Part shown: piece after piece, positions 13,798 to 42,278 of the stretch
How the letters are laid out: every line of letters starts with the position of its first letter
Numbering within the stretch: the stretch's first letter is position 1
Assembly: GCF_037042905.1 (NCBI RefSeq)
Contig: NC_087245.1
Location: forward strand, 26,970,001 to 27,034,000
Source: Lytechinus pictus
Taxonomy: Eukaryota
Length of the DNA: 64,000 bases
Direction of reading: 5' to 3'
Notes under the pieces: generated by a model
Databases searched by the model: none
What the model saw: the letters and a program-made list of their open reading frames with translations, nothing else
Told to the model about the DNA's origin: nothing
Position numbers and translations under genes: made by a program

Positions 13798-16700
13798 AAA
13801 CAAAAGATAGTAATAGTAAACAAAGTCAATTGCCAACTCTGCCAGTCAAACTTATCAAGAAAATCATATAAGAACAACATCTTGAAAAACAAATCATTGC
13901 ATCTAGAAAAGAATATGTTAAAATAAAAGAAAATCATAATGAATATTTCAACAAAGAATATCATGGTAAACAATGGATGATATAATTTGGATGTTATTTT
14001 CGGCAATTGAACAAAAATTTTCAGTTTATTTCTTTACAACATATCACAGACACTGACAGGTATCTGACACTTTTGACTGTACAGCTCATTTTTTTTCCAC
14101 AGTCCAGAATTCCTTTAAACTGTGACTTTCAATTGTAATGGTATGACACATTGGTAAGATCCGTCCTTTTGTCCGGGCGTTTTGTTCAGAAAATTGTTCT
14201 GAAAGAACTAGAAATGATATTGGAAGATAATCAGGTATTCACCATTGTTATAAACCAATGACGATTACTTTATTTTGACTTACCCCAGAGTGGAGGACGT
14301 TCACATGTAGGAGAGGACAAAGAGAGCTAGTCTTTGAAGATCTTACCGAGAATGAGAAACTGGAATATGAAATGACAAGCTCTGCCGAATCTTTTTCCTT
14401 CAGTTTCTGTCGAAATAAAAATGGAAAGAACTGTCTTGAGATTGGTAAGAGATAAAGAAAAAAATATAGGCCTATATTCTTAAGAGTAAAAAAACAAAGC
14501 TTCTGAGAATCTACGCTTCTTATGTATCCCCTGTCTCCAAGAATATTCATTTCTTCCTCATTCCAGCTCATTGAACTTTTTTTTACTAGTCAATCATGAA
14601 TATGTTTCACAAGTGTCCAAAATCTAACATGTATATGATAATGTCAATGAAATACATGAACATTGTTCTATAACTTGTTTTTCATAGTGCCTTTACGAAA
14701 CTATTGTCGTGGTATTGCCTATAATTTCTCGTATTTCTTAATACTGTTTATTGAAAGGTTAAGAACTTAACGTATGTCACATTATAGAACGTACTATGGA
14801 TACTATACTTTGTCATTTTTCATTTCATTATTTTTGTTTTCGCTTTGGAGAGCTAGCCATATTAGGACATCTGTAAAGACACAAAAACTTGTATTTGCAC
14901 TTTACTTTTTTTTTACAGTACTAAGCTCTTCTGGTGAATCGACCATGAAATTTAATGGTGAAGATTTGTGCCTCCCCATTGGATCATTCTACGAAAAAGA
15001 GAAGAGGTTTTCCTTCACAATCATCTACACCCGGTATTGTCTGGTTGTCAGGAACGTTTTATCAGGGGTTGAACTTGCTGCATCGGTCGAGAGTGATGAA
15101 TTGAGTGGTTTCAACTACTGCTATGCCACTTCCAATGGTGGAGGAGATTCTTCGCTACAGATTAAGGAGCTTGAATGTAAGTTGAGCCACTACACAAAAA
15201 TCCCTGTTGGAAAAAGAAACTACCACAGTGTGTTCACAGTGTGGTTGCATTATGTTCACGTTGCATTCGCAGTGAGTTCACATAGTGTTCCCAGTGTGTT
15301 CACAGTGTGTTCACAGTGTATTCACTCTGTATTCGCAGTGTGTTCACAGTGTATTGGCAGTGAGTTCGCATTTCGTTCGCAGTGTTTTCACAGTGTATTC
15401 ACTCTGCATCCGAAGTGTGTTCACAGTGTATTCGCAGTGAGTTCAAATTGTGTTCACGGCATATTCACTCTGTATTCGCAGTGTTTTCACAGGGTGTTCA
15501 CATTGTATTCGCATTGTGTTCACAGTGTGTTTGCACTCTATTCACAGTTTGTTCGAATAATACATGTAAGTGGACAATGCGGAGATGTAATTCACACTGT
15601 TGAATAATATTGTGTTCCACACTGTAAACACACTGTGAGCACACAGTGTTCTGCTCAGTAGGGATATAGGAAACGTAATATATTACTTCACCTCGATCAC
15701 AGGACCGTTCCGTAAAGAGATCCAACTATGGCAACTTTGCCAGTATTGTATCTACCATGGAAACCTCGATTTCAAAGTTACCATAGTAAGTCTTTATGGA
15801 ACGATCCCTACATGTCTTTTCTAAACTTTTCACAGCTAAACCTGAAAATCCCGTTGTTCAAAAGAAAATCAAAGAAATAGTTTCTGTTTCTGTCTGAAAA
15901 GGGGGAAGGGTGAGTGACCTGTTGGGTCATGCTGAATAGCTTTAACTTGTTAAATATTATGGACCCGATTTATTTGGCTTACCATCATGCATAGATTATT
16001 CTTTAGTTGCTTATTTTGACTTCAGTGTACCTTGTCTGGTAATTATTCATGATCTGACTATCATTGAACATCTTTCCTATTTTACACTTTGCGCCATAAG
16101 GTAATTATGATTCATGCGCATTAGTTTGATTTGATTTGATTTATTGTTTTCTTCTGCATTCATAACATTCGTATACAATACAATTTTCATTACGTAACAA
16201 ACATAATATATCGGTAATTGATTTGGTATGAATCATAAAGAAAAAAAAATAAAAAGGTCATTCTAAACAAATATGATCTACTACCGACAAAGAAAATAAC
16301 ATTTACAGTTTGCAGGAGAAGGATTAGCATTATAAGCAGATTGTTTGAAAAAAAATGACAACCCCGGTTTAGTTTGGTAAGTAAAAGGTAGTATAAAATA
16401 CGCTTTAAAGTCTCATATAGAAGGTGTTATTTCGCTGATATCAAAAGGGTATATTTTTATTTAACTAGATCGTTGTAATACACAAACATATCTGTATTAT
16501 CTATAATAAACAAACATATCTGTATTATTTATAATACACAAACATATCTTTATTATTTATATATGTATGTATATACTGAAAAAACCATTGACCATGTTTG
16601 CAATCACATTAAATCATTTATGACATCCAGCCCTAATCATAGTGTTCACTTTATCCCTTTCCAATGTTTAAGTTTCCGGAACTGAGATCTCGACGTTTAT

Positions 16701-19700
16701 AGGACGGTATAGAGGTAAAGGACGTGGAGGCGGTAAGTTTTCATGATTCATTCAACAGACTAAGAAAATCATTAAAAAAATTAAACAATATTTACTGAGT
16801 AAGTAAAATCTAATGATTAAGCTTGACATCAGCATTAAACTATAATATATATCCAGTAAAAGCATCCTCTCCTAAATAATTTGATACCATATTTTGTGAG
16901 ATATATTTGCACTTAGTTTCGATCCCTTTTCAATAAGATTGTGATGGAAAATTTTCAATGAAAATCATGAAGTATCAACTATAATGTTAATTCATACTCC
17001 AATTACATTGTTCCCTTGATTTTACAGCAACTCTTATAGAGTTCCAAAGTGATGTCACATAAACTTATTTTGCATTTCAGCGTTTTTTATACCATATTTT
17101 GTTAGAGCATGATGACAAACATTTAGAACCAGGTCATAGACTTTCAATGGAGCTAATTATGTATTCATGAGGTTATATCTACGGCCACCAAGGGACCGAT
17201 TCCCAACCAAATTTGGGTTTAAGGAGGTATTTCATCATGCAACCAATGATGTGACTTAAAGCGCTTTCTCTGAAGTTTAAAAAATGTCCGAATTTCACAC
17301 ACTTTTAGATTTAGATGCAATATTCTAAGAAGTATAGAATGCATATAACGTATCGCACATTTCAGGATGCAAAGGGGTGATTTCAGGTTTTCTTCAAATG
17401 CAAAACGCGCCCCCTTTTTATCTATCATAGAATTCAAGATTGTGCCCCAAAAGGAAATGTCACTGTTATTTATTTTGTGGTACATTATTATTAAGATAAA
17501 GAATCCCCATCAAATACATTTGTAACAAATCCACTTTTCATGATAACCATGGTTTGGAATTCAGTAAACCTTCAAATGCAAAGTTAGGGTTAATCTTTTT
17601 GTCAGCAATTATTTGAGAGGATGTTAGGTTACAAGCTCTGTGATGATATAGTTAGACCACCGAGTTCAAATATATTTGTGTAACAGGACGAGGCCAAGTC
17701 GAAGTTGGAAATACAGACGCTAGCAATGGACGAGGGAGTGGACGACGCGGCAAGAAAGGAGGAAAAGGTATATCATTTTATCTACATTTATCGTACTTCT
17801 ACGCATTTTTTAAAATGATCTGGCGGTATAACAAATGACCGTGAGAAAATAATGTAACTTAGAGGGAAATTCAAATTGGCACTCTGTTGGTTTAAATTGA
17901 AATAGAAAGTAAGACAAACACATCAACGTAACTTCATGTCAAGTTCATGAAATAATATTTGGATAGTGTTATAGTAAGAATAAGCTTATAGTTACTTCAA
18001 TTCATGTCGGTGATTGTTTTCTTATTAATTTGACAGGTTCTGATGAGAGTTCAGAAAGCAATGAGAATGGTGGCAAAGGAGGTAAAATATATAGTCTTTA
18101 TAATTTTGGGAATATTCATTGATAGATCACATTTAGACGTTATAATTAGTAATCCTATGGGAAAAATAGGTAACTTTGACTTATTTGATTTTATTGTGAA
18201 CATAAAAATCCGTTAGAAGTAAACATGGTGGAAGATGTAAATAACACGTGTTAAGCATAATCTGGTCTAATGAATTGCTTCGACTAAAGCGAACATTGGA
18301 TTTATGGAAGGTATGCGCCATTGTTAATGTTATTTATCCATGATAATTTGAAAGAACCAACTGCTGATTTAGCTTAGAAATATTACGAAAACAATTTTAT
18401 GGGACCGAATGGCGCGGCTGACCGTGGAATTGACCCAAATCAGAACAAATTAATAAGAAATACACTTGTAATTACAGGAGGCCAAGTTGGAAATGCAGAC
18501 GTTGCTTATGGACGACAGCGTGGAGGACGTGGCAAGAAAGGAAAAGGTAATATTGTGAATACGGAAAAGTTGAATTCATCTTAATCCACTCTGACTTTTG
18601 GATATTGAAGTAGACGTAGACGTAGTGCATTAGAATATTTTGAAGTCTTCCAATAACAATGGAAGTTAGCATACACATCGGGCTTATAAAGTTGGATTTA
18701 AATTGTATCAGAGTAAAACACACTGAAAGTTTGATTCGAAGTTGGTGAATGTGTTCATTATTTATTTAGATTCCAGTGGCAGTTCAGAAAGCAAAGAGAA
18801 CAGTGGCAAAGGAGGTAAGGTTTATTCCACATCTTATTCCTCGGAAAAATAATATCCATGCAGTAATGAGCAATATTGGTATTCGAGAATAAAGTATACC
18901 CCATGTATATCCATTAATATTTGTATATGACTTGATTTTGCTTAAAGCTTAGAAGAGACTTCGTAAATTTCATTTTGATGAAGGGCGTTTATTCTGTCAT
19001 GTCTGAATATTATAATAAAAGGTAGTACTCTGATTTTCAGATATTAAAGTAGATGTTGCAAACGAGAAAATAAGAGTTCTCGTGAATTGCTTGAATTGCA
19101 TTAGAGTAAAATACACAAACGTGATTTCGAGTCGGCGAATGTTCCCATTTTTGACAGATTCCGATAGCAGTTATAAGAAATATGGCAAATGAGGTAAAGT
19201 TAATTTATTGGGAATATTCCTCGAAAAATAAAATCCATGAAGTAATTAGTAATAATAGTATTCAAGATTAAAGCATTCATCGTGCATTCCAATTACAATT
19301 CAATTATGACATTACATTTAATTCATTTAAGTTAGTGAGAAAAATATCATGATTACAGGAGGCCAAGTCGAAGTTGGGAATGCAGAAGCTGCTTATGGAC
19401 GACAGCGTGGAGGACGTGGCAAGAAAGGAAAAGGTAATATTTTGTATACGGAAAAGTTGAATTCATCTTAATACACTCTGACTTTTTGATATTGGAGTAG
19501 ACGTAGCAAACAATCAATTGTGAGCTCTCTTGCATCTTGTATACCTAGTAGTGCGTCAGAAAATTTTGAAGTCTTCCAATAACATGATAACAATGAAAGT
19601 TAGCATACACGTCGGGCTTATAAAGTTGGATTAAAATTGTATCAGAATAAAATACACTCAAAGTTTGATTTGAAGTTGGTGAATGTTTTCATTATTTATA

Positions 19701-22700
19701 TAGATTCAAGTGATAGTTCAGAAAGCAAAGAGAAAAAAGGCAAAGGAGGTAAGGTTTAGTCTTCATCTGAGTTATTGGGGATATTCCGCAAAAAATAAAA
19801 TCCATCTTATAATGAGTAACATTGTTATTCGAGAATAAAGTACACCCCAGGTATACCCATTATTATTTATGTATGACTTGGTCTTAGACATTTCGTGAAT
19901 TTCATTTTGATGAGGGACGTTTATTCTGTCATGTCTGAATATTATAATAAAAGGTAGTACTCCGATTTACGGATATTAAAGTAGATGTTGCAAATGAGTA
20001 AATAAGAGTTCTCGTGAATCCCTTAAACGTAATAGTTGATCAAAAAAACCATAGACAGCAGAAAAGATATATAAGTCTTTGAATAGTCTTGACATTTAGC
20101 ACGTTACTTATAAAGTTGGATTTAAATTGTATTAGAGTAAAATACACTCAAACATGATTTCAAGTCGGTGAATGTTTCCATTTTTTGACAGATTCCGATA
20201 GCAGTTCAGGAAGCAGAGAGAACAATGGCAAAGGAAGTAAGGTCATGTCATTTATTGGGAATATTCCTCGAAAAAAATTTAATGTAGTAATTAGTAAAAT
20301 GGTATTCATGATCATGAATAAAGTATTCATCATGCACTCCAATTATAATTTAATTATGAAATTAGATTTAATCTATATAAGTTATTGAGACAAATATTTT
20401 TGAAAGTTGCTTATGGACGACAGCGAGGAGGACGTGGCAAGAAAGGAAAAGGTAATATACGGAAAAATTGTATTCATCTTTATACACCCTGACTTTTTGG
20501 ATATTGGAGTAGATGTAGCAAACAATCAATTGTGAGCTCTCTTTCATTATGTACACCTAGTAGTGGAGTGGAGCGTTGTGGCCCAGTGGATTAGTCTCCG
20601 GACTTTGAAACAGGGGGTCTGGTAGGAATTTATTCCTTGAAATGCCGAGCGCTGGAGAGGCTCCTTGAGCTACAGCCGGGGTAATAATATCCAATTCATT
20701 TGGAAGCGCATAGAGACGTTATTCATATGCGCTGTACAAGAACTGACTATTATTATTATTAGTAGTAGTAGTAGTGCATCGGAAAATTTTGAAGTCTTCC
20801 AATAACAATGAAAGTTACCATACACGTCGGGCTTATAAAGTTGGATTTAAATTTTATCAGAGTAAAACACACTCAAAGTTTGATTTGAAGTTGGTGAATG
20901 TTTTCGTTATTTATTTAGATTCCAGTGGCAGTTCAGAAAGCAAAGAGAACAGTGGCAAAGGAGGCAAGGTTTAGTCTTCATCTGAGTAATTGGGGATATT
21001 CCTCGAAAAATAATAACCATGCAGCAATGAGTAATACTGGTATTCGAGAATAAAGTACACCCCATGTATACCCATTATTATTTGATTATGACTTGATTTT
21101 GATTAAATCTTAGATGAGATTTCGTGAATTTTATTTTGATAAGAGACGTTTATTCTGTCATGTCTGAATTTTATAATAAAAGGTAGTACGCTGATTTTCG
21201 TTGCAAACGAGTTCTCGTGAATTCCTTGCACGTAATGGTATTAGGTCCCCAAAACATAGCAGAAAAGATTAACAAGTCTTCCAATAGTCTTGACATTTAG
21301 CACGTAACTTAAAGGACAAGTCCACCCCAACAAAAACTTGATTTGAATAAAAAGAGAAAAATTCAACAAGCATAACACTGAAAATTTCATCAAAATCGGA
21401 TGTAAAATAAGAAAGTCATGACATTTTAAAGTTTCGCTTCATTTCACAAAACAGTTATATGCACATCTCGGTCGGTATGCAAATGAGGGAACTGATGACA
21501 TCACTCACTCACTATTTCTTTTGTATTTTATTATATGAAATATGAAATATTTTGATTTTCTCGTCATTGTCATGTGAAATGAAGTTTCATTCCTCCCTGA
21601 ACACGTGGAATTCCATTATTTTAACATTTTGTGCTTCAGGCAAGGAGGTCCTAATCATCAAATTCGTAAAAATTGAAATATTGTATGATTAAAACAATAA
21701 AAAACAAAAGAAATAGTGAGTGAGTGACATCATCGACTCTCTCATTTGGATGTAACTGGCTCGTTCATATAACTATTTTGTTAAAAATAAGCGTAACTTT
21801 GAAATGTCATAACTTTCTTATTTTACATCCGATTTTGATGAAATTTTCAGCATTGTGCTTGTCTGATTTTTCTCTATTGATACAAATCAACATTTTTCTG
21901 AGGTGGACTTGACCTTTAATGCCAATCTAATCAAGTTGGATTTAAATTGTATTAACGTAAAATACACTTAAACATGATTTCACGTCGGTGAATGTTTCAA
22001 TTTTTTCACAGATTCCGATAGCAGTTCAGGAAGCAAAGAGAATAATGGCAAAGGAGGTAAGTTAATTTATTGGGAATATTCCTCAAAAAATAAAATAGGA
22101 ATCAGTAACAATGGTTATCAAGATTAAAGTATTCATCATGCATTCCAATTATACTTTGATTATGAAATAAGATATAATTTATTTAAGTTATTGAGATAAA
22201 TATTTTGAATCATGATGATTACAGGAGGCAAAGTCGAAGTTGGAAATGCAGAAGTTGATTTTGGACGACAGCGTGGAGGACGTGGCAAGAAAGGAAAAGG
22301 TAATACTGTGTATACGGGAAAGTTGAATTCATCTTAATCCACTCTGACTTTTGGATATTGGAGTAGACGTAGCAAACAATCAATTAAGAGCCCCCTGGCA
22401 TTCTGTACACCTAAATAGTGCATCATAAAGTTTTGAAGTCTTCTAATAACAATGAAAGTTAGCATACATGTCGGGCTTATAAAGTTGGATTTAAATTGTA
22501 TCGGAATAAAACACATTTAAACATGATTCGATGTTGGTGAAAGGAGGTGAGGTTTAGTCTACATCTGAGTTATTAGGGATATTCCTTAAAACTAATATCC
22601 ATGCAGTAATGAGTTATATTGGTATTCGAGAATAAAGTATACCCCATGTATACCCATTATTATTTGTGTATGACTTGATTTTGCTTAAATATTAGAAGAG

Positions 22701-25700
22701 ATTTCGTGAATATCATTTTGATAAAGGACGTTTACTCTGTCATGTCTGAATATTATAATAAAACGTAGTACTCCGATTTTCGGATATTAAAGTAGATGTT
22801 GCAAACGAGTAAATAAGAGTTCTCGTGAATTCCTTGCACGTAATGGTATTAGATCCCCAAAACATAGCAGAAAAGATTAACAAGTCTTCCAATAGTCTTG
22901 ACATTTAGCACGTAACTTAATGCCAATCTAATCAAGTTGGATTTAAAATTGAATTAGAGTAAAATACACTCAAACATGATTTCACGTCGGTGAATGTTTC
23001 CATTTTTTCACAGATTCCGATAGCAGTTCAGAAAGCAAAGAGAAAAATGGCAAAGGAGGTAAGGTTAATTTATTGAGAATATTCCTCGAAAAATAACATT
23101 CATGTAGTAATTAGTAATAATGGTATTCAAGATTAAAGTATTAATCATGCATTCCAATTCCAAACATGATTCGATGTTGGTGAAAGGAGGTGAGGTTTAG
23201 TCTACATCCGAGTTATTAGGGATATTCCTTAAAACTAATATCCATGCAGTAATGAGTAATTTTGGTATTCGAGAATGAAGTATACCCCATGTATACCCAT
23301 TATTTTTTGTGTATGACTTGATTTTGCTTAAAGCTTAGAAGAGATTTCATGAATTTCAATTTGATAAGGGACGTTTATTCTGTCATGTCTGAATATCATG
23401 ATAAAGTGTAGTATTCTGATTTTCGTATTCAAGTACTAGTAGATGTTGCAAACGAATAAATAAGAGTTCTCGTGAATTGCTTGCACGTAATGGTATTAGA
23501 TCCCTAAAACATAGCAGAAAAGATTAACAAATCTTCCAATAGTCTTGATATTTAGCACATAACGTAATGTCAAACTTTTAAAGTTAGATTTAAATTGTAA
23601 AAGAGTAAAATACACTCAAACACGAGTTCAAGTCGTTGAATGTTTTTTGTTGTTGATAGATTCCGATAGCAATTCAGGAAGCAAAGAGAATAATGGCAAA
23701 GGAGGTAAGTTAATTTATTGGGAATATTCCTCAAAAAATAAAATAGGAATCAGTAACAATGGTTATCAAGATTAAAGTATTCATCATGCATTCCACTTAT
23801 ACTTTGATTATGAAATAAGATATAATTTATTTAAGTTATTGAGATAAATATTTTGAATCATGATGATTACAGGAGGCAAAGTCGAAGTTGGAAATGCAGA
23901 AGTTGATTTTGGACGACAGCGTGGAGGACGTGGCAAGAAAGGAAAAGGTAATACTATGATGCAGCGGTAAATGCAAATAGCAAACGAAAAGGTCATTTTG
24001 ATTGGTCACTTGGTTTTTAATGAACAGTTCCGTGGTTACCGATTATAAATGTCAATATCTGGTAGTCATAAAATAACTAAACTTTGCCGCTTTAATTTTG
24101 TATCAATAGGTTCTAGTGAAAGCAGTTCAAAAAGCAGGGAGAAATCAGGAAGACGAGGTAAAATATTAATGTGATTAGCCTTTGTCGTTATTAAACACTC
24201 TTTTGCTGGTTTATTAGGCCTTTTCTTTCATAACCGTGATACAGTAATAACCTATAAGCCCGTTGGTTTTAAGGACATCTTATGTCGACCTTGCGATACA
24301 GGACAAGTCAGCTTGTTGAAAAGATGCCCTCACAAAATGTCAATGACATATATCAGGAATAATGCCGACCCAAGTGCTGAGCCTTGTGGCACCCTGAGAG
24401 CACACTGGAAAAGATGAGATCTGCCAGGAATCCTATGATCCAACCATGTTTTAGGCCCGTAATCCCATAATTCTCCACTTTGCCATGCAACTTCATGTGT
24501 TACACCTTGTCAAAAGGTAGATCTTTAGGCTTCTTATACGCTACTGCCTTAATGCCAATGTAAATCATGTAATTATCGAGTTAATTGTTGATTTTAGGGC
24601 CTTGCTGAAAACAAAGGCTGATTTTATAGGTATTTTTTTCTATGATTTTACTTCACAAAAGCTCAAACTAAGAAATCGTTTCTTTAGAGATGGTTTGAAT
24701 TTGAGTCTTACCAATAATTACATATTATTTTGTTGTGAAGGATGGCGTACTTTTCAATGTCGACGGGGCGAACGTGAACAGGTGCTTAGAGGGCTATCTG
24801 AGAACGGAGATCTGGAGTTTGAATTTGGCAGCACTGATTCCGAATCGATCAGGATCGAGTTTACCAGGAGCAAGAATGCCTTCGACGACAGTATCGTTAT
24901 TGGTAAGAAAGGGGAATATCATGATATTATCATCCAAAATGTTTATGAAATAAACCCTGATATTTTATTTTGCGCAAATCCTTTTCTCCGAAATGGTAGT
25001 ACAATTAAAGCACTTATTATATTCTGGTAAATCTACGGAGCATTAATTATCAAAGTTTGGAGTCACATATTTTGTATGATAAATCATATTTTTAGTGAAA
25101 TATTGAAGGAGAAACACCTGTCCCTTAGAAAATCATTTATAGACGTATTGGATCCTGAGCGGAGAGGAAAAGAAAGAAAAGGAGAGAGAAAGAGAGGTAT
25201 AAAATAAACTGATGTTTAATCGGATATTAAATTTCGAATATCATCTCCAACAGTTCTAAGTTCTTCTGGAGAATCATCCATCAGGCTTGGTGGACAGGAT
25301 TTGTGCGAGCCAATGCTGGGCTCATTTTACACACTTGGCTTGGAGTTTTCCTTCAGCATCAGATATGCATCAGGGAGACTCGTTGTCAGTAATGATAATA
25401 TTGAAGGAGCAGAAATGGTGGCAGTGATCGACGAGGATGTACTGGTCGGTTATAGGTTCTGTTATGCAACTGTAAATGGTGGATCGGACGTTACAACGTC
25501 GCTGAACGTCAAACAGATCGAATGTAAGTAAGCTTATTCACACCTTTGTATACTGGGGGATCGGTGGCAAAGGATTAAAAGAATTGTCACCCCCATAAAA
25601 AGGAGACTTTTGACATGTTAAACAAAAAATATATATATCCTATCAAACTATTCAAACTTTTGTTTTGCCCAATTACGAGTTTTCAGCATTGGCGGCGGAA

Positions 25701-28700
25701 GCCCAAAAATTATGGGGGGACCACCAAAATTTGTTGACAAGCAACAAAAAAGGTTATCATAAAAAAAAAAAAAAAATATGTGTCCAAGTGTTTTAACATT
25801 TTTTTTCTCAAAACCTTATTCAGTTTCTTCAGATTTCCTCTCCGAGTTTGTATCACGATACGGAAGCAGAGTCCGAGAACGTGTTCGAGGTAAATACAAT
25901 GTGCTCGTGATACATATAAAGAATGTGGGATAATTTATATGGACTTTGCTTTGGTTATTTCTGTAATGTGTGAATAATAGCACAAGAAACATGTTTTTGT
26001 TGTTGTTGTAATGATATGCTGGCTCTCATCTTTTACTGGGAGGGTCGTGTATTAATATCCCATCGAGACACTATAACGTCCCATTATCACAAAGCATCAA
26101 ATCACACTTTTCCACTCTCCACCCAGGTGTTTGGTGGGATGCGAATGCCAATGCAGGAAGAAGAAGAACATAGAAAGAAAATGAAATAAAGAAGAAAAGA
26201 AGAAAAAGAGAAGAAAAAGAAAAATGTTTGAACATATAACTTGTACAAAAAGACAAGGAAAATCGGAGTCGAAAAGGAGATCAAAAACAGCAACAGAAGA
26301 AGAAATTATGAAGAATTGATAATTCATAATCTTTATTTCTGTTTGTAATAAGTATAGACATCCGACTCTTGCATGTATGCCATTAATCCTTATCATATGC
26401 ATTAACAGGGAACCTTGGGAGGAACGTTGGAGATGCTGAAGTTGAAGCTGAACGCACGAGAGGACGTAAGAGAGGAAAGGGAAATAGTAAAGGTAGATAT
26501 CTCTTATATATTTTCCTTTAGAAGTTAACATCAGCTGAACTATACTGTAATTTACAGGGATATAATCATTAGCGTGATAAAAGGGGTATTCACAGTAAAA
26601 ACGCCGTTTACAAACTGTTTAAACAGTTTTAAACAAGTGTACGAAAATCTTAAGCAAAAAAGTTTAATTTTTAATACTTATTAGATTTAGATTTGATTTT
26701 AGATTTAGATTTTATTTCCGTTCAACAATTTTTTCAAAATATAATCAAAGTAACAATACATATTCAATATAATCGATGATACAGACAAATCAATGAAATT
26801 TCGTAACAAATGTTGAATATAAATTAAACAAAACTAAAATTTGTTGCAGTAATTTTATAAATGAAAAGAAACAAGAAATGAACGGAGGGACTTGCCAAGA
26901 AAAGCAATAGCTTGTAGAGAAGGCAAGCCCCTAAACTTAGTTTCAATACTAATTATAAACAAACTATATATACAACTCTATACAAAAATCGAGACGGACA
27001 CAGAAGACAAACTTAAAACAAGTAATCCACAAATATCAAAATAAAACGAATAAGCGACAACAAAAATAAGAGAAAGTAATTCAAATAATAATAATTACAG
27101 TGGTAACACACAAAAAAAAGTATTTATACAAAATCATAATAGGGAGGGAAAAGTGGCAAAGGAAAGAAAGAGGGAGATAAGGGAGGTGCAAATAAAAAGT
27201 GCAAATGAAAAGAGGAACATGGCAGGTGCACAGGTCGTAATGTATTGTATCATGTTGTAGTATTGGTTTTTTTTTATAAGTAAAGTTTGACAAATTTATT
27301 GGTAGTTAAAGGTTAAGTTATTATGTAGTTTTAGTTTAGGTTATGTGTTAGCTTGACATGTTGGTGTGGAGCAGGGGCCGCGGAACGGTTTTCAAAGTGG
27401 GGGGTCTGACCATGCTAAAAATCACAATCATATGGTCATTTTTACATTTTTGTACACGGTTTTGGAAAAAAGTGGGGGGCTGAAGCCCCCCCCCCCCCCG
27501 GTTCCGCGGCCCCTGTGGAGTATTGACAAATGAGCATCTTTTTAAGTTTGCGTTTAAAAATATTAAGGTTTGTAGATTCTTTAAAGTCGTTGGGCAGGGA
27601 ATTCCAATACACAGGTCCAAAAAAGATAAAAGAGTTTTTCGCTAATATACAGTGCGTATCAAAAAAAAGTTTACACTTTGAAAAAGCCCTGTGAATAAAA
27701 AAATATACAACATGTGGGTACATTTTTCACATATATTCTTGAGTTTGGGTCTCATCTATCAAATGAAAGTAAAAGTTTTGACAGGATGTTACACTTGAGT
27801 GAGCACTGTCCATTTTTGTAAAGCTCGCAGAAATCTGTTTGCGCAGAAATGCTCATTTTCACGTTGTGTCAAGGGGAAAGGGCGAAATCAAACTTACCCT
27901 GCGAAACATTTCTCATATATTTCCCTTGCACTTTTAGTCAATTGAAGTAAAACAGATACATTCAAGCATTTTGTAACAATTTTGCCATCCAAATTGAAAT
28001 TTCAACACTTAGTAAGCACAACCTTTACCCTTTTTGTGCTAGCTGGATCTGAGGACATAACTGAATCTGAACAAAAGTTTATATCAGACATCTCCAGAAT
28101 TTTTTCACTTAGTTTTTATCATTCTTAGTGGGTTTACATTTCATTTTTCATTTAACACTTGTTTCTCCACACTTTTCCCAAGCTTGACAATGATTAAAAA
28201 AATGAAAATCAAGCCTAAGCCATTTCATGTAAATCACAGCTTAGTGTAAAGCAAATATCGTCACGATGGCCTCAGTGTGTGGGGGAGCGGGATAGGGCGC
28301 AATTCACTCTTCGAAGTGTTTTGGGCAAGGAAACAAGTTAAAAAAGGTAAAAAGATATCTTTAAATCAATTTTATTAGCTAAATTCCACATTTTTTTCAT
28401 GATCAAGGTCTACTTTTATTGCATAACTATTTCAAAGTTCTGCGCAAATCATTTTTCACTAACTTTTCAAAAGTAAGTGGTGCTCACTCAAGCGAAAATA
28501 TTTTTCGACAGTTATATCGTCATTCGCTTAAATGGATCTGTATTAATGTTAAAATGTGGAAAAATCTTCAGGATATTACAAATGTATAATTTTACAGGAT
28601 TTTTTCAAAGTGTAAACTTTTTTTTGATACGCACTGTAGTACGGTTAGGGGGTAGGTGATAACAATTACGTTGTCTCGTTGGGTAATCGTGTATAGAGGA

Positions 28701-31700
28701 GTTTTTACAGAACATATTTGAAAAAAATTGTTGGGAGATCATCTTTGTTTAGTTTATACATAAATTGGGTGAGTTGGAAAAGATATAAATCACTCACTTT
28801 AAGAATATTATTTTGGAAGAATAGTATATCTGTGTGTGATCTGAATTGGTTTTGAAAAATTATTCTAAGAGCCTTCTTCTGCAGCAACAGTATTCTTTGT
28901 AATTGTGTTTGGATCGCACAACCCCATGCCAAAATGCCATAACTAATGTATGGTAATATTAATGTATGATACAGTGTTAGTAAAGTGTGAGATGGGAGAA
29001 AATATTTCAGTTTGTTCATAATTCCGATGTTTCTTGAAATTGTTTTGCATATATTATTGATGTGTGGTTTCCATGATAGCTTATTATCAATAGTAATTAT
29101 CTTAGTAGCTTATTATCAATAATATTATCTTAATAGCTTATTATCAATAGCTTATTATCAATATGTAATGTATACAGACCCGCTTTGGTTAGTGACAAGC
29201 TGCGTGTTGGATTCAGTTGATAGACGAATAATAATGTTTGTTTTGAGACACAAAAGTAAACCACACATTTGTCATACCATCTGAAAATGTGACTCGCGTG
29301 ACAATAGCATTTTTAGGATTGAAACTTGAACCAATTATAAAAACTGCTTGAACGGAGAAGGTGGTAAAACAATTTAGATTTACCGCTTCAAATGTATCCT
29401 GCAAAACGGTAATCATTCTTTTTGGATTGGTTGGGCTTTTTTTTGTAAACGGGTAGAATTTGGCATTTTTAGCTGTGTCTAACGGCTACTATACAGCAGG
29501 GACCGCGAAACTGAAGAATGAGGAAGTTTCATCCCCCGCCATCTTTTAAAGTAAACGTGTACAAAAATATATTATTTTACCATTTATTGTGTTTGTATGT
29601 TCACCCCCCTCACTTTCCACAACATTTTGAGGCCTTGTATAGTGTTGTACCTTTATGTTGATAGAACATTCTATCAATTTTAATGTACTGTACTTTGCAA
29701 TTAAATCGGTATAACTAGGTAAAGTATAAACAACATTATCCTACATCTTTTTCATTCTAGGCTCTAGTGGAAGCAGTTCTGAAAGTAAAGACAGAAGCGG
29801 AAAACGAGGTACACGTATTATTTTATTCATTGAACATATTGAGGCATGTATCCAATAGGGTGTGGCAGCAAATAAAAGGCCAGTGTCACACCGGCAAAAT
29901 TGACTCCTGGTGCCCCGTTGCTTAAAACTTACCATTATGGTAACTTTGCCATCCAATGGTAACTTGCATAAAAAATCCTTGAATTTGATTGGCTGTTGAT
30001 CAGCGTTTCCATGGTAGTTACCATTGGATGGCAAAGTTACTTTAATAGTAACTTTTATGCAACGGGGCCCAGACTGACCAAATATATTATTTCATATGAC
30101 ATATCAATGTTCAGTACGAAGTCGGTTTCGTTGATGTGACTATATAGTACTCACCTGTTATGAAATGGGTCACTCGTTTTGGAAATAATACCCCCCCCCC
30201 TTAGTACGGAGAAAAATTTGTCCCTTTTCAGTGTGAAGCCTTTTTTATTATTGTGCTCGGCAGATTACTTTTAATGGGAGAATTAGGTTAATTTGGGGAC
30301 GTGAAATAACCTTTTTAATGCAAAGCAGAATCAGCAATCTCTCCGACGAATAATGATAATGGCAAAGACATATAATCAATTCATAAAATCCTGGATCTGT
30401 CGATGGACTTGTTGATCATTTTTGGCTGCCACTTTCCACTCCTTAGTGTATTAAAAAACTTTGAGAGAACCCCAAAACAGATTACACTGGAATATTAAAA
30501 GAAGATAAATAAAATTAAGATCCATGTAGCAGGGGCTAAAGAGAAAGTATAATAAACAAATACGTAAGGCAATAACACTACATATGCACAAAGAGAACAA
30601 GAAGGGTGCAAAGGGAGAATAAACGATCGATCATTATTTTTATTCGTTTTGTTATTTAGTGTTGATATTGATATAGAAATATGATTGATTGATATCTTCG
30701 TGGATAGGTAACCGAAATAGGAATGGCGGAGACAGTGAAGTTGAAAATGACAGCGATGGAGGACGAAGGAGGGGAAATGGTAGGGGTCGAGGTAAATATT
30801 CCTAATAATGTGGAATGAATTATTTATAATGCTTTAAAAAAGATACCTTGCTGGCTTTTTGCTGCTGAATGAATTCAAGATGATTACTGTCATTATTTCT
30901 GTTTAAATGAATACAAACTAATTTGAATTGTCATTTGAATTTGAACATATTGCTGATGATGAAGATGGTTAGACAAACTGTCCCTTTTTAAAACCTTTAG
31001 AATGCAGTACACCTAATCCAATGGAATGAAAAAAAATAGAAATATATTAATATATATCTTATGGAAAATTTCAAGTAGAATGAGTTTGATCATAATTGTC
31101 CCTTTGGCATCTACATTGGTGTTCATGTATCTCAATACGTACATAGGGCCATACTCACTATAGCTTATTTACATTTATGAGGAGAAATTATCACAGGTTA
31201 ATATAGGCCTATATTTTTTATCTGGTAAATTTATTCAACCAGAGAGTAGGAGGAAGGAGGTCGGATATACAGAAACTGCATCCAGGCGAAACAGGTATAA
31301 GGACAGACGACAATGGGGCAGTAGAAGAGGTGGGACAGATTGCTTCATTCATACCATAATTCTCTTGTCTATTTTTGAACATAGTATATGGGTCTAGTTC
31401 TCTCCAATGTTCACATTTTGTTGTACGAATTATTGCTTGTTAACTTGTAGGGCGTAGTAACATACAGGTTTTTGCCTCTTCTCGGCTACTTTTCTGTAAC
31501 ATCAGCAGCAACAATNNNNNNNNNNNNNNNNNNNNNNNNNNNNNNNNNNNNNNNNNNNNNNNNNNNNNNNNNNNNNNNNNNNNNNNNNNNNNNNNNNNNN
31601 NNNNNNNNNNNNNNNNNNNNNNNNNNNNNNNNNNNNNNNNNNNNNNNNNNNNNNNNNNNNNNNNNNNNNNNNNNNNNGGGGACAGGGGGCGATCACCATT

Positions 31701-37700: not shown

Positions 37701-40700
37701 TAGTGCGTGTCACTCAAATCCTTTTTGACTAAACCCTTTTTTTTCAGATTGTGAATATCCTAGATTATATTTCAATAGAAATCTGCTATCAATCCCTTAC
37801 AGTATATCTCCAGTGATAAAAACTAAAAAAGTATGCTTTAATTACATAGTTGTATAATAATTCTGTTTCTCCTGTTTTTGTTCTCTTTTTTTTTCAATGT
37901 CAGCAAGTCGAGAGATTTCTTCTGAGACATCGCTTGAAAGGACAACGGTTGCTGAACAACTTACTTTCCCTGCAACCTTACAGTTTTCATTTAATCTCGA
38001 GGCTGACCTGTTGTACCTGATATTGAGTCGCTCAGATGGGTCTAGTTATACGATAAGTAAATAGATTCAGTCACTTATGTATACTGACATTAGTTTGGAA
38101 ATTTGCTCCTGCTCTCCTTTCTGAGCGGATGTAGGCCTGTAATCTGAACTCGGGTTAAATTCAAGCTCTGGTCCAAAGTTGTAGTTTGACTATGGAGACC
38201 CAAATGTGACACAAATATTTAATAATACAGGTTTGATTCATCTGCTCATTTGAAATTGAAATCATTCATAACTATTTGGGTATGATAACTTATAATTACT
38301 AATACCATGACCTAAGTTCAAAGAGAATTCAGACTATGGGCCATAGGGTTAGGCATTGGTGGTGCTTCAAGGGGGCAGGGGAGATGGTCCTTTTTTTTCT
38401 TCAAGTAATGAACAAAAGATGAATAAGAAAAAAAACTACTTTAGTTTAAAAAGAGATGAATCGAAGAAAACAGAAGGATACGAGGTTATGGCCAAGTGAC
38501 TCTATATAATACTCTATATAATACTTTTATTTAATAATGAAGAACAATATTGACATTAATTTGGGGTCATATATCCCCTTTCCATAATACCAGAATAAGA
38601 GTTGCAACTATGAGGAATGAAATTAGGGTTATCATCAGGGCGATTATGAATCATTAATAATGTAGAAAACATAACATGCTATCTGTTTAAATAATGAAAT
38701 CTCTACAATTATTTCACCCCCCCCCCCCAAAAAAAAAAATAATAATTACAAAGCTTCTCACCATTCCACTCTCTTGACACTAAGGCATGCATCAGGTCTT
38801 TTTTCTGGGACACATTGTATAAGAAACGTTATGGAGATAAACATCTAGCAATATTCAATCTACACAAGATAAGAATGTCACATTTTCTAATTAAAATAAA
38901 TCTTTATATAACTTTGGTCATGGTAAAAATATTTAAGTAAACACAGGGTTAGTCATTTGTACTTGGATCATCTTCAATCATTTTTTTTTATTATATTCAT
39001 GTTTTCTCTTAAATGCTTTTTATTCTCTGTTTCATATATCTGCAGAAATGAGTACAAAGCCGACAGATTCATCTGTTATTATCACTGGGAGTGATGAAAT
39101 CCTCGCCAAGTCACCAAGCGAACCTTTCCTCCTGTGGGGCAATGACATTCCCATACAAAACAACCTCATAGTTACGGTTGAAAAAACCAATGTGGTAGTT
39201 AGCAATATGGCTACCGATTTGACTATGACAGCTGCTATATCAGAAGCCCATTTGTACAATCACATCGACATCAGGACGGAAGGAGGTGGTATTCAGGATT
39301 TCAGCGAGGAAGAAGTCGAAGGTAGGTAGAACGTTTCAAGCAGGGACAGATTGAGGATTTCAGAATAAGAAGGGCACAAAAATCTTGTTTTTTGTAAAAT
39401 CACCCAGTCAACCAATATAGGGGAAATAGCTGTTACTCATAATCCATCACTTTTATTCTATCCAAGAAGTAGAGAAGGGACAGGTTGGTCTTTCATAAAG
39501 ATGTTCATAAGTTAGAAATGAGTGAGCACAAAGTGGTGAGAGTTTTTTTTTAGTAAGTGATATGTCCCTACTTCGCTGACTGAGCATCTCAGACATTTAG
39601 AAGTTGTATTTAAATTGTGCATTACCTGAGAAGAATGATAATAATGTATGTGATGCAAAAGAAGTTGAATAAACAGGAAATTCCATTTCAGTAAATGTGT
39701 GTAATACGTTGACCTAAAATTTTGCACAAAAATTACCCAAATGGATTTCATTTTTTAATGATTGAAACTAAGTTTATTGATTATGGGAGGATGTGTGCTT
39801 ATGCAGAAAATCCATGCATTCCTTTCTGGCAAAGTGATGTTCTGACATTCTATTCGGTGGGTAGCCTATAATAGGGTAGCTCTGAAATTATAAATAATTT
39901 TAACAGTTAGTTTAAAATTGCTGTAGGAAAATTGATGATGATTATCCTTTGTTATACACTAAGCCAACTTGAAGAACTTGTCAAACATTTTTCATTTAAA
40001 AAAAATTAATTTATTCCTTTGCCATAGAACCACCAGCAACAGAGTCACCAGCTGAAGAAACTGAGGCACCAGCAACAGATCCACCACCTGCAGAGACTGA
40101 GGCACCAGCAACAGAGCCACCAGCTGAAGAAACTGATGCACCAGCAACAGAGCCACCACCTGCAGAAACTGAGGCACCAGCAACAGAGCCACCACTTGCA
40201 GAGACTGAGGCACCAGCAACAGAGCCACCAGCTGAAGAAACTGATGCACCAGCGACAGAGCCACCACCTGCAGAAACTGAGGCACCAGCAACAGAGCCAC
40301 CACCTGCAGAGACTGAGGCACCAGCAACAGAGCCACCACCTGCAGAGACTGAGGCACCAGCAACAGAGCCACCACCTGCAGAGACTGAGGCACCAGCCAC
40401 AGAGCCACCACCTGCAGAGACTGAGGCACCAGCCACAGAGCCACCACCTGCAGAGACTGAGGCACCAGCCACAGAGCCACCAGCTGAGGAAACTGAGGCA
40501 CCAGCCACAGAGCCACCACCTGCAGAGACTGAGGCACCAGCAACAGAGCCACCACCTGCAGAGACTGAGGCACCAGCAACAGAGCCACCACCTGCAGAGA
40601 CTGAGGCACCAGCAACAGAGCCACCACCTGCAGAGACTGAGGCACCAGCAACAGAGCCACCACCTGCAGAGACTGAGGCACCAGCCACAGAGCCACCAGC

Positions 40701-42278
40701 TGAGGAAACTGAGGCACCAGCAACAGAGCCACCACCTGCAGAGACTGAGGCACCAGCAACAGAGCCACCACCTGCAGAGACTGAGGCACCAGCAACAGAG
40801 CCACCACCTGCAGAGACTGAGGCACCAGCAACAGAGCCACCACCTGCAGAGACTGAGGCACCAGCAACAGAGCCACCACCTGCAGAAACTGAGGCACCAG
40901 CAACAGAGCCACCACCTGCAGAAACTGAGGCACCAGCAACAGAGCCACCAGCTGAAGAAACTGATGCACCAGCAACAGAGCCACCAGCTGAAGAAACTGA
41001 GGCACCACCAACACAGCCACCAGCTGAAGAAACTGAGGCACCAGCAACAGAGCCACCACCTGCAGAGACTGAGGCATCACCAACACAGCCACCAGCTGGA
41101 GAAACTGAGGCACCAGAACCGGATGAAGGAACAAGGGGAGACAGTCCCGTGGTAGAATTACCAAGGAATCGGGGAAATAGAATCATACAAGAAGGTAATG
41201 ACCAATCAACACAAGGATCATCTTTGAAACCATCTCAAGTTCCCCCAGTCATCGAAACAATTCAAAACACTGGATCTACTGACGAATCAGGTATATTAAC
41301 TTCTTATACAACATATTGCTTTATAAGAATATCATTACGTGCATATGAAAATATTAAAAATCAGGGCATTTTCTGATTTTAAAAAATCCACTTTGTCAAA
41401 CCATATTCAATCTGAATTTCTGAATTATGTTTTTTAGGCTTAAAGATATTTCACATGGATGGAATTATCATTAAGTGCATGTGATAATACTAAAAAACTT
41501 AACATTTTTCTGGTTAAAAAAAATCACTTTGCCTATATTCATTGTGAATTGTTATGTTTTTTAGTCTTGAAGATATTTCACATGGATTGAGTTATGTTTC
41601 CATGATGAAAAGGATAATACATGAGTATTTTTATATTTTTGCCTCTTTCTAATTTTATTTACTACATATCCATAAAAGGTATCTTGTGTTCTGCAATGTC
41701 AGTTCTAGTACTAGTAGAGCTAGGAGCGGGAACAGTACAGTAGTAGTAGAAGAAGTAATAGAGTACTGAACTGTGACATCATCAATTTTCACTTTTTGCA
41801 TATCATCGTTTTTTATACCATATTTTCGTAGAGCATGATGAAAAACCCCTACAACCCAAATTTGGTAGGAATCGGTCCGTGGGGTCCCAAGATATGACCT
41901 CATGAATACATAATTATACCAATTGAAGTCAATGCATGATAGGCTTGGTTCCTAACATTTAGAACCAGGCCAATAATACACCGACTTCAATGGGACTAAT
42001 GTATTCACGAGGTTATATCTAAGGCCCCCATGGAACAATTCCCTCCAAAGTTTGGTAGTGGGGTCATCATGTTCTACCAAAATATAGTATCAAGATGCTG
42101 AAATGCTAAAAAAGTTTTTGTGACATCATCACTTTGGTACTCTATAGTAGTAGTAGTAGTAGTAGTAATAGTAGTAGTAGTAGTAGTAGCATATTAGTTG
42201 TACTACAAGTAGTAGTATTAGTAGTATTAGTAGTACTAGTGGTAGTAGTAGTAATAATAGTAGTAATAGTAGTAGTAA

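Follow-up and report, generated by a model that had tools for sequence, protein, structure and literature searches.

Tropoelastin has exon borders that are phase 1:1 throughout, with exons of two classes in alternation and extensive removal of exons as cassettes (PMC12554196). The PEVK region of titin is a disordered spacer made from many small repeated exons; it has grown and shrunk through tandem exon duplication, with transposon involvement, and differential exon skipping sets the length of the spacer (PMC6469411; see also PMC3575840). The micro-exon genes (MEGs) of schistosomes, which are restricted to schistosomes, have exons of 36 bp or less that form most of the coding sequence; the exons are symmetric, the products are secreted, and variation arises by exon skipping (PMC8293314). 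The locus considered here is a tandem array of small exons in the sea urchin Lytechinus pictus, in a stretch of 64,000 nucleotides (nt) (assembly GCF_037042905.1, contig NC_087245.1, positions 26,970,001 to 27,034,000 of the forward strand), which we call the window and by whose numbering all positions are given.

An exhaustive protein search with exon 25220-25528 as query places the array in L. pictus LOC129260138, annotated as an uncharacterized protein. The protein matched by that query, of 2,366 amino acids, holds the window's own sequences; the LOC129260138 protein is about 2,380 amino acids long (2,381 is the figure used to compare coding share). We consider it likely that the locus is a tandem array of duplicated, phase 1-1 small exons, variably used, that encodes a disordered, net-basic linker between two domains, D1 and D2. 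The array fits the phase 1:1 cassette-linker kind to which tropoelastin and titin PEVK belong, a kind and not a homologous family, in having single-phase borders and tandem-duplicated exons whose number varies among species.

Anatomy of the exon array

Between 17687 and 24157 of the window, on the + strand, lie 16 exon-like copies, ten of type A and six of type B. The A copies are 45 nt long, except for one of 36 nt (A3*) and one of 48 nt (A10); the B copies are 69-81 nt long, except for one that is truncated at its 5' end to 45 nt (B4t). Exon and flanking-intron sequence together divide A copies into two subtypes, Aalpha (A2, A4, A6) and Abeta (A3*, A5, A7, A8, A9). Two further A copies persist as remnants without an exon body. 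The array and its flanking exons are as follows.

14289-14444 and 14919-15176, + strand: D1, two phase-1 exons upstream of the linker, residues 196-333 of RefSeq protein P0013
16673-16732, + strand: L0, first linker exon, 60 nt, phase 1-1, peptide SGTEISTFIGRYRGKGRGG
17687-17767, + strand: B1, 81 nt, an old, diverged B exon with a Lytechinus variegatus orthologue
18037-18081, + strand: A1, 45 nt, an old A exon with an L. variegatus orthologue
18478-18546, + strand: B2, 69 nt, joined onward in RNA contigs to A2, A4 or A10
18770-18814, + strand: A2, 45 nt, Aalpha, found in RNA joints and in RefSeq
19158-19193, + strand: A3*, 36 nt, Abeta, carrying an in-frame TGA and a deletion of 9 nt, its two splice sites intact
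19359-19433, + strand: B3, 75 nt, a cassette absent from RefSeq isoforms X6 and X9
19704-19748, + strand: A4, 45 nt, Aalpha, a cassette absent from isoforms X3, X6, X8 and X9
20192-20236, + strand: A5, 45 nt, Abeta, found in RNA joints and in RefSeq
20407-20451, + strand: B4t, 45 nt, a B copy without its 5' 30 nt and original acceptor, unused
20919-20963, + strand: A6, 45 nt, Aalpha, identical as an exon to A2, with a GC rather than a GT donor, in no RefSeq isoform
22012-22056, + strand: A7, 45 nt, Abeta, a cassette absent from isoforms X5, X7, X8 and X9
22225-22299, + strand: B5, 75 nt, a cassette of the same sequence as B6
about 22519-22560, + strand: Aalpha remnant 1, exon body deleted, only ...AAAGGAG/gtgagg remaining
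23014-23058, + strand: A8, 45 nt, Abeta, in RefSeq X1-X6, X8 and X9
about 23162-23200, + strand: Aalpha remnant 2, duplicating the remnant at 22519, with 570 of 630 positions alike in the segment around it
23660-23704, + strand: A9, 45 nt, Abeta, 1 nt different from A7, absent from isoform X2
23873-23947, + strand: B6, 75 nt, of the same sequence as B5
24110-24157, + strand: A10, 48 nt, an old A exon for which both L. variegatus and Strongylocentrotus purpuratus have orthologues, absent from isoform X4
24741-24902 and 25254-25523, + strand: D2, two phase-1 exons downstream of the linker

The lengths of all 16 copies are divisible by 3, and each copy is phase 1-1, the split codon common to them giving two bases to the start of each exon and one to its end. 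With both ends of each exon in phase 1, the reading frame survives the omission of any subset. The same phase is found in D1, L0, the array, D2 and a second linker farther downstream, and the phase-1 frame of the array is the frame of the RefSeq protein.

The genomic repeat unit is B-Aalpha-Abeta, about 0.9-1.0 kb where it is free of transposons. Tandem Repeats Finder found nothing in the array, the unit being longer than that program's 500-nt period limit, and the units were defined instead by repeat finding and pairwise alignment. Two pairs of exons are identical (B5 and B6, A2 and A6), and A7 and A9 differ at 1 nt. The array is not a dispersed repeat, since all 14 of its matches in the 811.7-Mb assembly lie inside the array itself.

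A first-pass annotation of the window had proposed about 16 copies of two types, with lengths in multiples of 3 and phase-1 junctions, lying between exons at 16673 and 24741. The exact map gives 16, and both flanking exons are real, the one being L0 and the other the first exon of D2. The repeated B-A-A units of that annotation are also recovered, but the near-identical introns that it described are an overstatement: in pairwise alignments the flanking introns of the copies are mostly 70-95% identical. Only the segments A7..B5 and A9..B6 are close, being alike at 367 of 391 positions, with 99% identity in the 120 nt after A7 and A9 and in the 120 nt before B5 and B6.

The array encodes the entire linker between D1 and D2. 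In isoform X1 the linker is 265 amino acids long, about 11% of the coding sequence (about 265 of 2,381 amino acids), and is made up of 26% G, 17% S and 13% K, with a net charge of +21 and 14 S-x-E motifs. The A exons are Ser-rich and carry the S-x-E motifs, and the B exons carry a basic block of the GRQRGGRGKKGK type. A linker of this composition is probably intrinsically disordered, and the protein as a whole looks secreted, having a signal-peptide-like N-terminus.

Transcripts, splicing and alleles

The evidence supports an array that is transcribed, spliced at the predicted borders and used in varying in-frame subsets. RefSeq gives nine isoforms of LOC129260138 (X1-X9), and these differ solely in array exons. 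The path of X1 is L0 B1 A1 B2 A2 B3 A4 A5 A7 B5 A8 A9 B6 A10. Single exons are missing from X2 (A9), X3 (A4) and X4 (A10); X5 is without A7 and B5, X6 without B3 and A4, X7 without A7, B5 and A8, X8 without A4, A7 and B5, and X9 without B3, A4, A7 and B5. None of the nine includes A3*, B4t or A6, so that the stop-bearing copy, A3*, is skipped, as the first-pass annotation had said it must be; it is unremarkable in this, being one of several dead copies. The linker is about 70 residues long in the shortest transcripts and about 265 in the longest.

Three runs, drawn from two studies and bearing no firmer label than probable RNA, supplied contigs that were aligned to 18160-24159. The runs, X1, X2 and X29 (run names, distinct from the isoform names), were chosen by a search with exon 24741-24904, and this downstream exon is complete or nearly so in the contigs; a search with the whole array had matched runs at 0.08-0.10 of words, much of it contributed by two transposon insertions in the introns. 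Cover is confined to exon bins and is zero in the introns, which is the pattern of spliced RNA. Among the joints listed, GT..AG joints fall exactly at the predicted borders. B2 is joined to A2 in runs X2 and X29 (18544>18768), to A4 in run X1 (18544>19702), and to A10 in all three runs (18544>24108), the last joint skipping 5.6 kb, the whole inner array. Also present are A2>A5 (run X2), A4>A5 and A5>A7 (run X1; the latter 20236>22012), and A7 joined to B5 or B6 (22054>22223). A4 is covered in run X1 and not in runs X2 or X29. B4t has depth 0 in runs X1 and X2 and 0.17 in X29, and A3* is used by none of the joints listed. Transcript-derived protein fragments of the linker were sought, and none was found.

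These data bear on whether the array is real. Might the assembler have over-expanded one or two true units? The likeness of A7..B5 to A9..B6 (367/391), and the absence of cover over A8 and A9 in the three contig runs, would be in keeping with such an error, but the introns differ by 5-30% among copies, which also have private lesions and private transposon insertions; RNA of other samples contains the distinct exons A2, A4, A5 and A7 as well as the joints A4>A5 and A5>A7, and A8 and A9 are present in RefSeq isoforms. We regard an assembly artefact as barely credible.

Is the variety of transcripts generated by splicing, or does it reside in the alleles? Within each of the three runs B2>A10 occurs alongside B2>A2 or B2>A4 at comparable contig depth, and this coexistence with longer paths favours true skipping. 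Further, the 48-nt A10-type exon alone distinguishes isoforms both in L. pictus (X4) and in S. purpuratus (X1 versus X2-X4). An alternative is that the array is real but that each haplotype has one constitutive splice path, the variety being due to copy-number and gene-conversion polymorphism, pooled individuals and read misplacement; in that case the repeat, lying in a disordered linker, would be evolving neutrally. This is possible, and we find it somewhat doubtful. It accommodates the difference between runs in the use of A4, the dead copies in the reference, as relaxed constraint, and the fast turnover among sister species described below. It must also explain how B2>A10 comes to be found with B2>A2 or B2>A4 inside single runs, at similar depth, in three runs of two studies, and how the A10-type exon comes to be missing from isoforms in two species; and many haplotypes would be required for nine or more distinct paths. 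In the older L. pictus annotation (P0019, P0021) there are many substitutions, and the path is only L0 B1 A1 B A10. This short-linker protein suggests a short isoform, a shorter haplotype or a collapse in the older assembly, and another haplotype or assembly would suit the allelic explanation.

Also in favor of allelic differences are joints that go back along the reference, from an A5-like to a B3-like exon, which occur in all three contig runs and cannot arise from the reference haplotype by linear splicing. They are most simply read as a sign that other haplotypes have an intact Abeta at the place of A3*, or an intact B at the place of B4t; the chain B2>A2>A5-like>B3-like of run X2 is collinear with unit 1 of the reference, and fits it if A3 is intact. 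Back-splicing, giving circular RNA, is a less likely source of these joints, as the run X2 chain is collinear with unit 1, and is disfavored also by the flanking introns, which hold direct and not inverted repeats.

The joints that go back count against our preferred reading of a variably used array, as do several further points. Given the identity of B5 with B6 and of A2 with A6, and the single difference between A7 and A9, some junctions may have been placed on the wrong copy. Allelic variation in copy number could account for some or all of the isoform variety. A8 and A9 lack cover in the three contig runs. In a raw-read RNA run, X31, no array exon is covered and only transposon reads are present, a result that says nothing on other samples. 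Disorder and secretion are read from the sequence alone. Lastly, of 18 copies, counting the two remnants with the 16 exon copies, five are dead, a hint that selection on copy number is weak, and this argues against a finely tuned function.

Our estimate is that splicing and allelic differences both contribute. The array had been proposed as a combinatorial isoform generator; of this proposal the in-frame variety stands, in the nine RefSeq isoforms and the RNA joints. Exon choice as regulated, functional splicing, as against allelic difference or misplacement, is a candidate only. A bolder proposal would have the array both copy-number polymorphic and alternatively spliced, giving personal and tissue-dependent repertoires of linker length in a secreted protein of several lectin domains; selection would drive the rapid expansion of this tunable spacer, by a different unit in each of L. 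pictus, L. variegatus and S. purpuratus. We think this unlikely; if it were true, the spacer would serve, for example, matrix assembly, adhesion or recognition.

Linker evolution among sea urchins

The protein search found relatives among echinoid proteins only. The orthologues, L. variegatus LOC121431742 (locus L013) and S. purpuratus LOC576141, have the same domain order and phase-1 A and B micro-exons. The order in L. variegatus is L0 B1 A1 [B A1']x3 B Aalpha (Abeta pseudo-exon) B A10. Its three B-A1' units are spaced by about 794 bp and hardly differ in sequence (tree branch lengths 0-0.003), and it has a single B-Aalpha-Abeta unit. B1, A1 and A10 form orthologous pairs between the two Lytechinus species, and Aalpha and Abeta are older than the split. 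Multiplication of B-Aalpha-Abeta is confined to L. pictus, and that of B-A1' to L. variegatus. The single B-Aalpha-Abeta unit of L. variegatus indicates that the L. pictus expansion is recent, as the first-pass annotation had claimed. S. purpuratus LOC576141 has a short linker, and has four to five near-identical copies of the whole domain-plus-linker module. The copy-number comparison with related species that had been suggested therefore finds a different unit expanded in each, indicating fast, lineage-specific turnover, probably by unequal crossing over.

Some details of the orthologues are of interest in themselves. The L. variegatus Abeta homologue (L013:16767-16811) is a pseudo-exon in which the acceptor AG has become TG while the frame is still open. 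In P0018, a RefSeq model of L. variegatus, 18 amino acids at residues ~538-555 (ETHSKFDLKLVNVFIIYL) correspond to intron sequence just upstream of Aalpha, probably through a mis-chosen acceptor; an open stretch matching these 18 amino acids is also found upstream of L. pictus A6, at ~20860-20918. In S. purpuratus, residues 190-1000 of P0023 (LOC576141) comprise four near-identical tandem modules of about 217 amino acids each, and isoforms omit the 16-amino-acid cassette RDKGSKKDRSSKKSGR from one or another module.

Has selection favored diversity in the linker? Between L. pictus and L. variegatus the orthologous array exons are about 94% identical and the surrounding region about 88%, which suggests mild purifying, and not diversifying, selection on the peptide. 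A diversity generator like the schistosome MEGs, under diversifying selection in, for example, immune or gamete recognition, would find some encouragement in the secreted-looking product with its lectin-like domains, in the variable in-frame use of exons and in the fast, lineage-specific turnover. But the orthologous exons are more conserved than the introns, the features that define MEGs are absent, and the exons encode low-complexity, near-identical peptides, so that skipping alters the length of the linker and not the diversity of its sequence. We hold such a generator to be quite improbable.

A second, unexpanded linker homologous to the first lies downstream of D2 in the same gene:

25824-25889, + strand: L0'
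26409-26492, + strand: B'
29761-29808, + strand: A'
30708-30791, + strand: B''

B-like and A-like micro-exons also precede D1. Together with the second linker, they make L0-B-A-B-A look like the ancestral linker design. How might the present array have come from it? In the path that we propose, an ancestral L0-B-A-B-A linker, still kept in the second linker of the gene, would have become L0 B1 A1 B Aalpha Abeta B A10 in the Lytechinus ancestor. In L. pictus, unequal crossing over of the B-Aalpha-Abeta unit of about 0.9-1.0 kb would then have multiplied the middle part. Later decay, by a stop in A3*, truncation of B4t, a GC donor in A6 and deletion of two Aalpha copies, would represent birth-and-death turnover, and the omission of exon subsets in frame would yield variation in linker length.

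Surroundings of the array and comparison with known systems

D1 and D2 are paralogous domains of about 140 amino acids, 53% identical. A model of D2 built from 12 homologous domains has a predicted local distance difference test score (pLDDT) of 87 and a predicted template modelling score (pTM) of 0.85; its fold matches are galectin- and ConA-like beta-sandwiches and residues 952-1089 of CPAMD8, with template modelling (TM) scores of 0.55-0.67 at about 10% identity. From the model, D1 and D2 are galectin-like beta-sandwich domains, and the protein has several domains of this galectin/ConA-like kind. A protein-atlas search with the D2 exon gave weak leads only, all at 0.90 or below. PF12248 (Methyltransf_FA) is the sole Pfam family matched by the protein, in its C-terminal domains; it scores 38.1 bits at residues 2083-2189 of P0013, against a gathering cut-off of 24.2, and D1 and D2 do not reach the gathering score of that family. 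Pfam searches of single-exon translations gave nothing useful, the one weak PF12248 match lying far downstream. In the same gene, a large exon at 40027-41148 (+ strand) holds about 29 copies of a 12-amino-acid repeat rich in Pro, Thr and Glu (TEAPATEPPPAE), mucin-like in look, and immediately after this repeat, at 41134-41148, is an RGDSP motif, the RGD of which is residue 1670 of P0013.

The introns of unit 3 contain two transposon insertions, one resembling a short interspersed element (SINE) and the other a palindromic miniature inverted-repeat transposable element (MITE):

20567-20770, + strand: SINE-like high-copy insertion in the intron after B4t, depth 9,000-20,000, with loose ends at 20568/20619
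21309-21919, strand not assigned: palindromic MITE-like high-copy element in the A6-A7 intron, its 143-nt arms 84% complementary

Most raw RNA reads on 20567-20770 match up to 20618/20619 and then continue as GTGGGTTCGAATCCC..., which is like the T-arm of a transfer RNA (tRNA). Reads that diverge at this point originate from tRNA-related copies elsewhere; a scan of the insertion with ARAGORN found no intact tRNA. The MITE-like element has a word depth of 10^4-10^5 in RNA-derived contigs, which marks it as a high-copy, transcribed repeat family of this genome. Elsewhere in the introns of LOC129260138 are a tandem repeat with a 22/44/77-nt period (CAGTGTGTTCACA...) at 15226-15554, after the second D1 exon, and 162 consecutive N, from a gap or from masking, at 31516-31677.

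What does the locus offer? The gene and its isoforms are already in RefSeq, uncharacterised, and a search of the searchable literature for three locus names found no paper that mentions them. The locus is a clean, young case of the building and remodelling of a disordered linker by tandem duplication of symmetric exons, with intermediate states in view: live copies beside those disabled by a stop, by truncation or by loss of the donor, as well as transposon insertions. Three urchin species, each with a different expanded unit at the same locus, are available for comparison, and the locus could help to separate length variation at the level of splicing from that at the level of alleles. The effect on general understanding is small, the principle being established in tropoelastin, titin PEVK and modular extracellular proteins, of which phase 1-1 exons are typical.

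The first-pass annotation was reminded of schistosome MEGs, and the likeness extends to exons that are symmetric and removable without a frameshift (16/16) and to a product that looks secreted. It fails in exon size, coding share and lineage: the urchin array exons are 36-81 nt long, mostly 45 or 75, and amount to about 11% of the coding sequence, and the gene is without MEG homology, its relatives being echinoid only. The resemblance is an analogy only. Titin PEVK is nearer, in having duplicated small exons in a disordered spacer of variable length; titin, however, is an intracellular muscle protein of hundreds of exons, with a known regulator, RBM20. Tropoelastin (ELN) is an extracellular protein, as the urchin product would be, and it shares with the array phase 1:1 borders and two alternating exon classes, and in the urchin array, as in tropoelastin, the split codon is mostly Gly (G/GN). 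There is no sequence homology between the two, and the classes differ, being hydrophobic versus cross-linking in tropoelastin and Ser-rich/acidic versus basic (RGG/KK) in the urchin. Unlike tropoelastin, the urchin protein confines its cassette region to a linker of about 265 amino acids between folded domains of a 2,381-amino-acid protein, and the recent tandem duplication of intron plus exon is still visible. By analogy, then, tropoelastin would be the closest functional parallel to the urchin array, with titin PEVK second.

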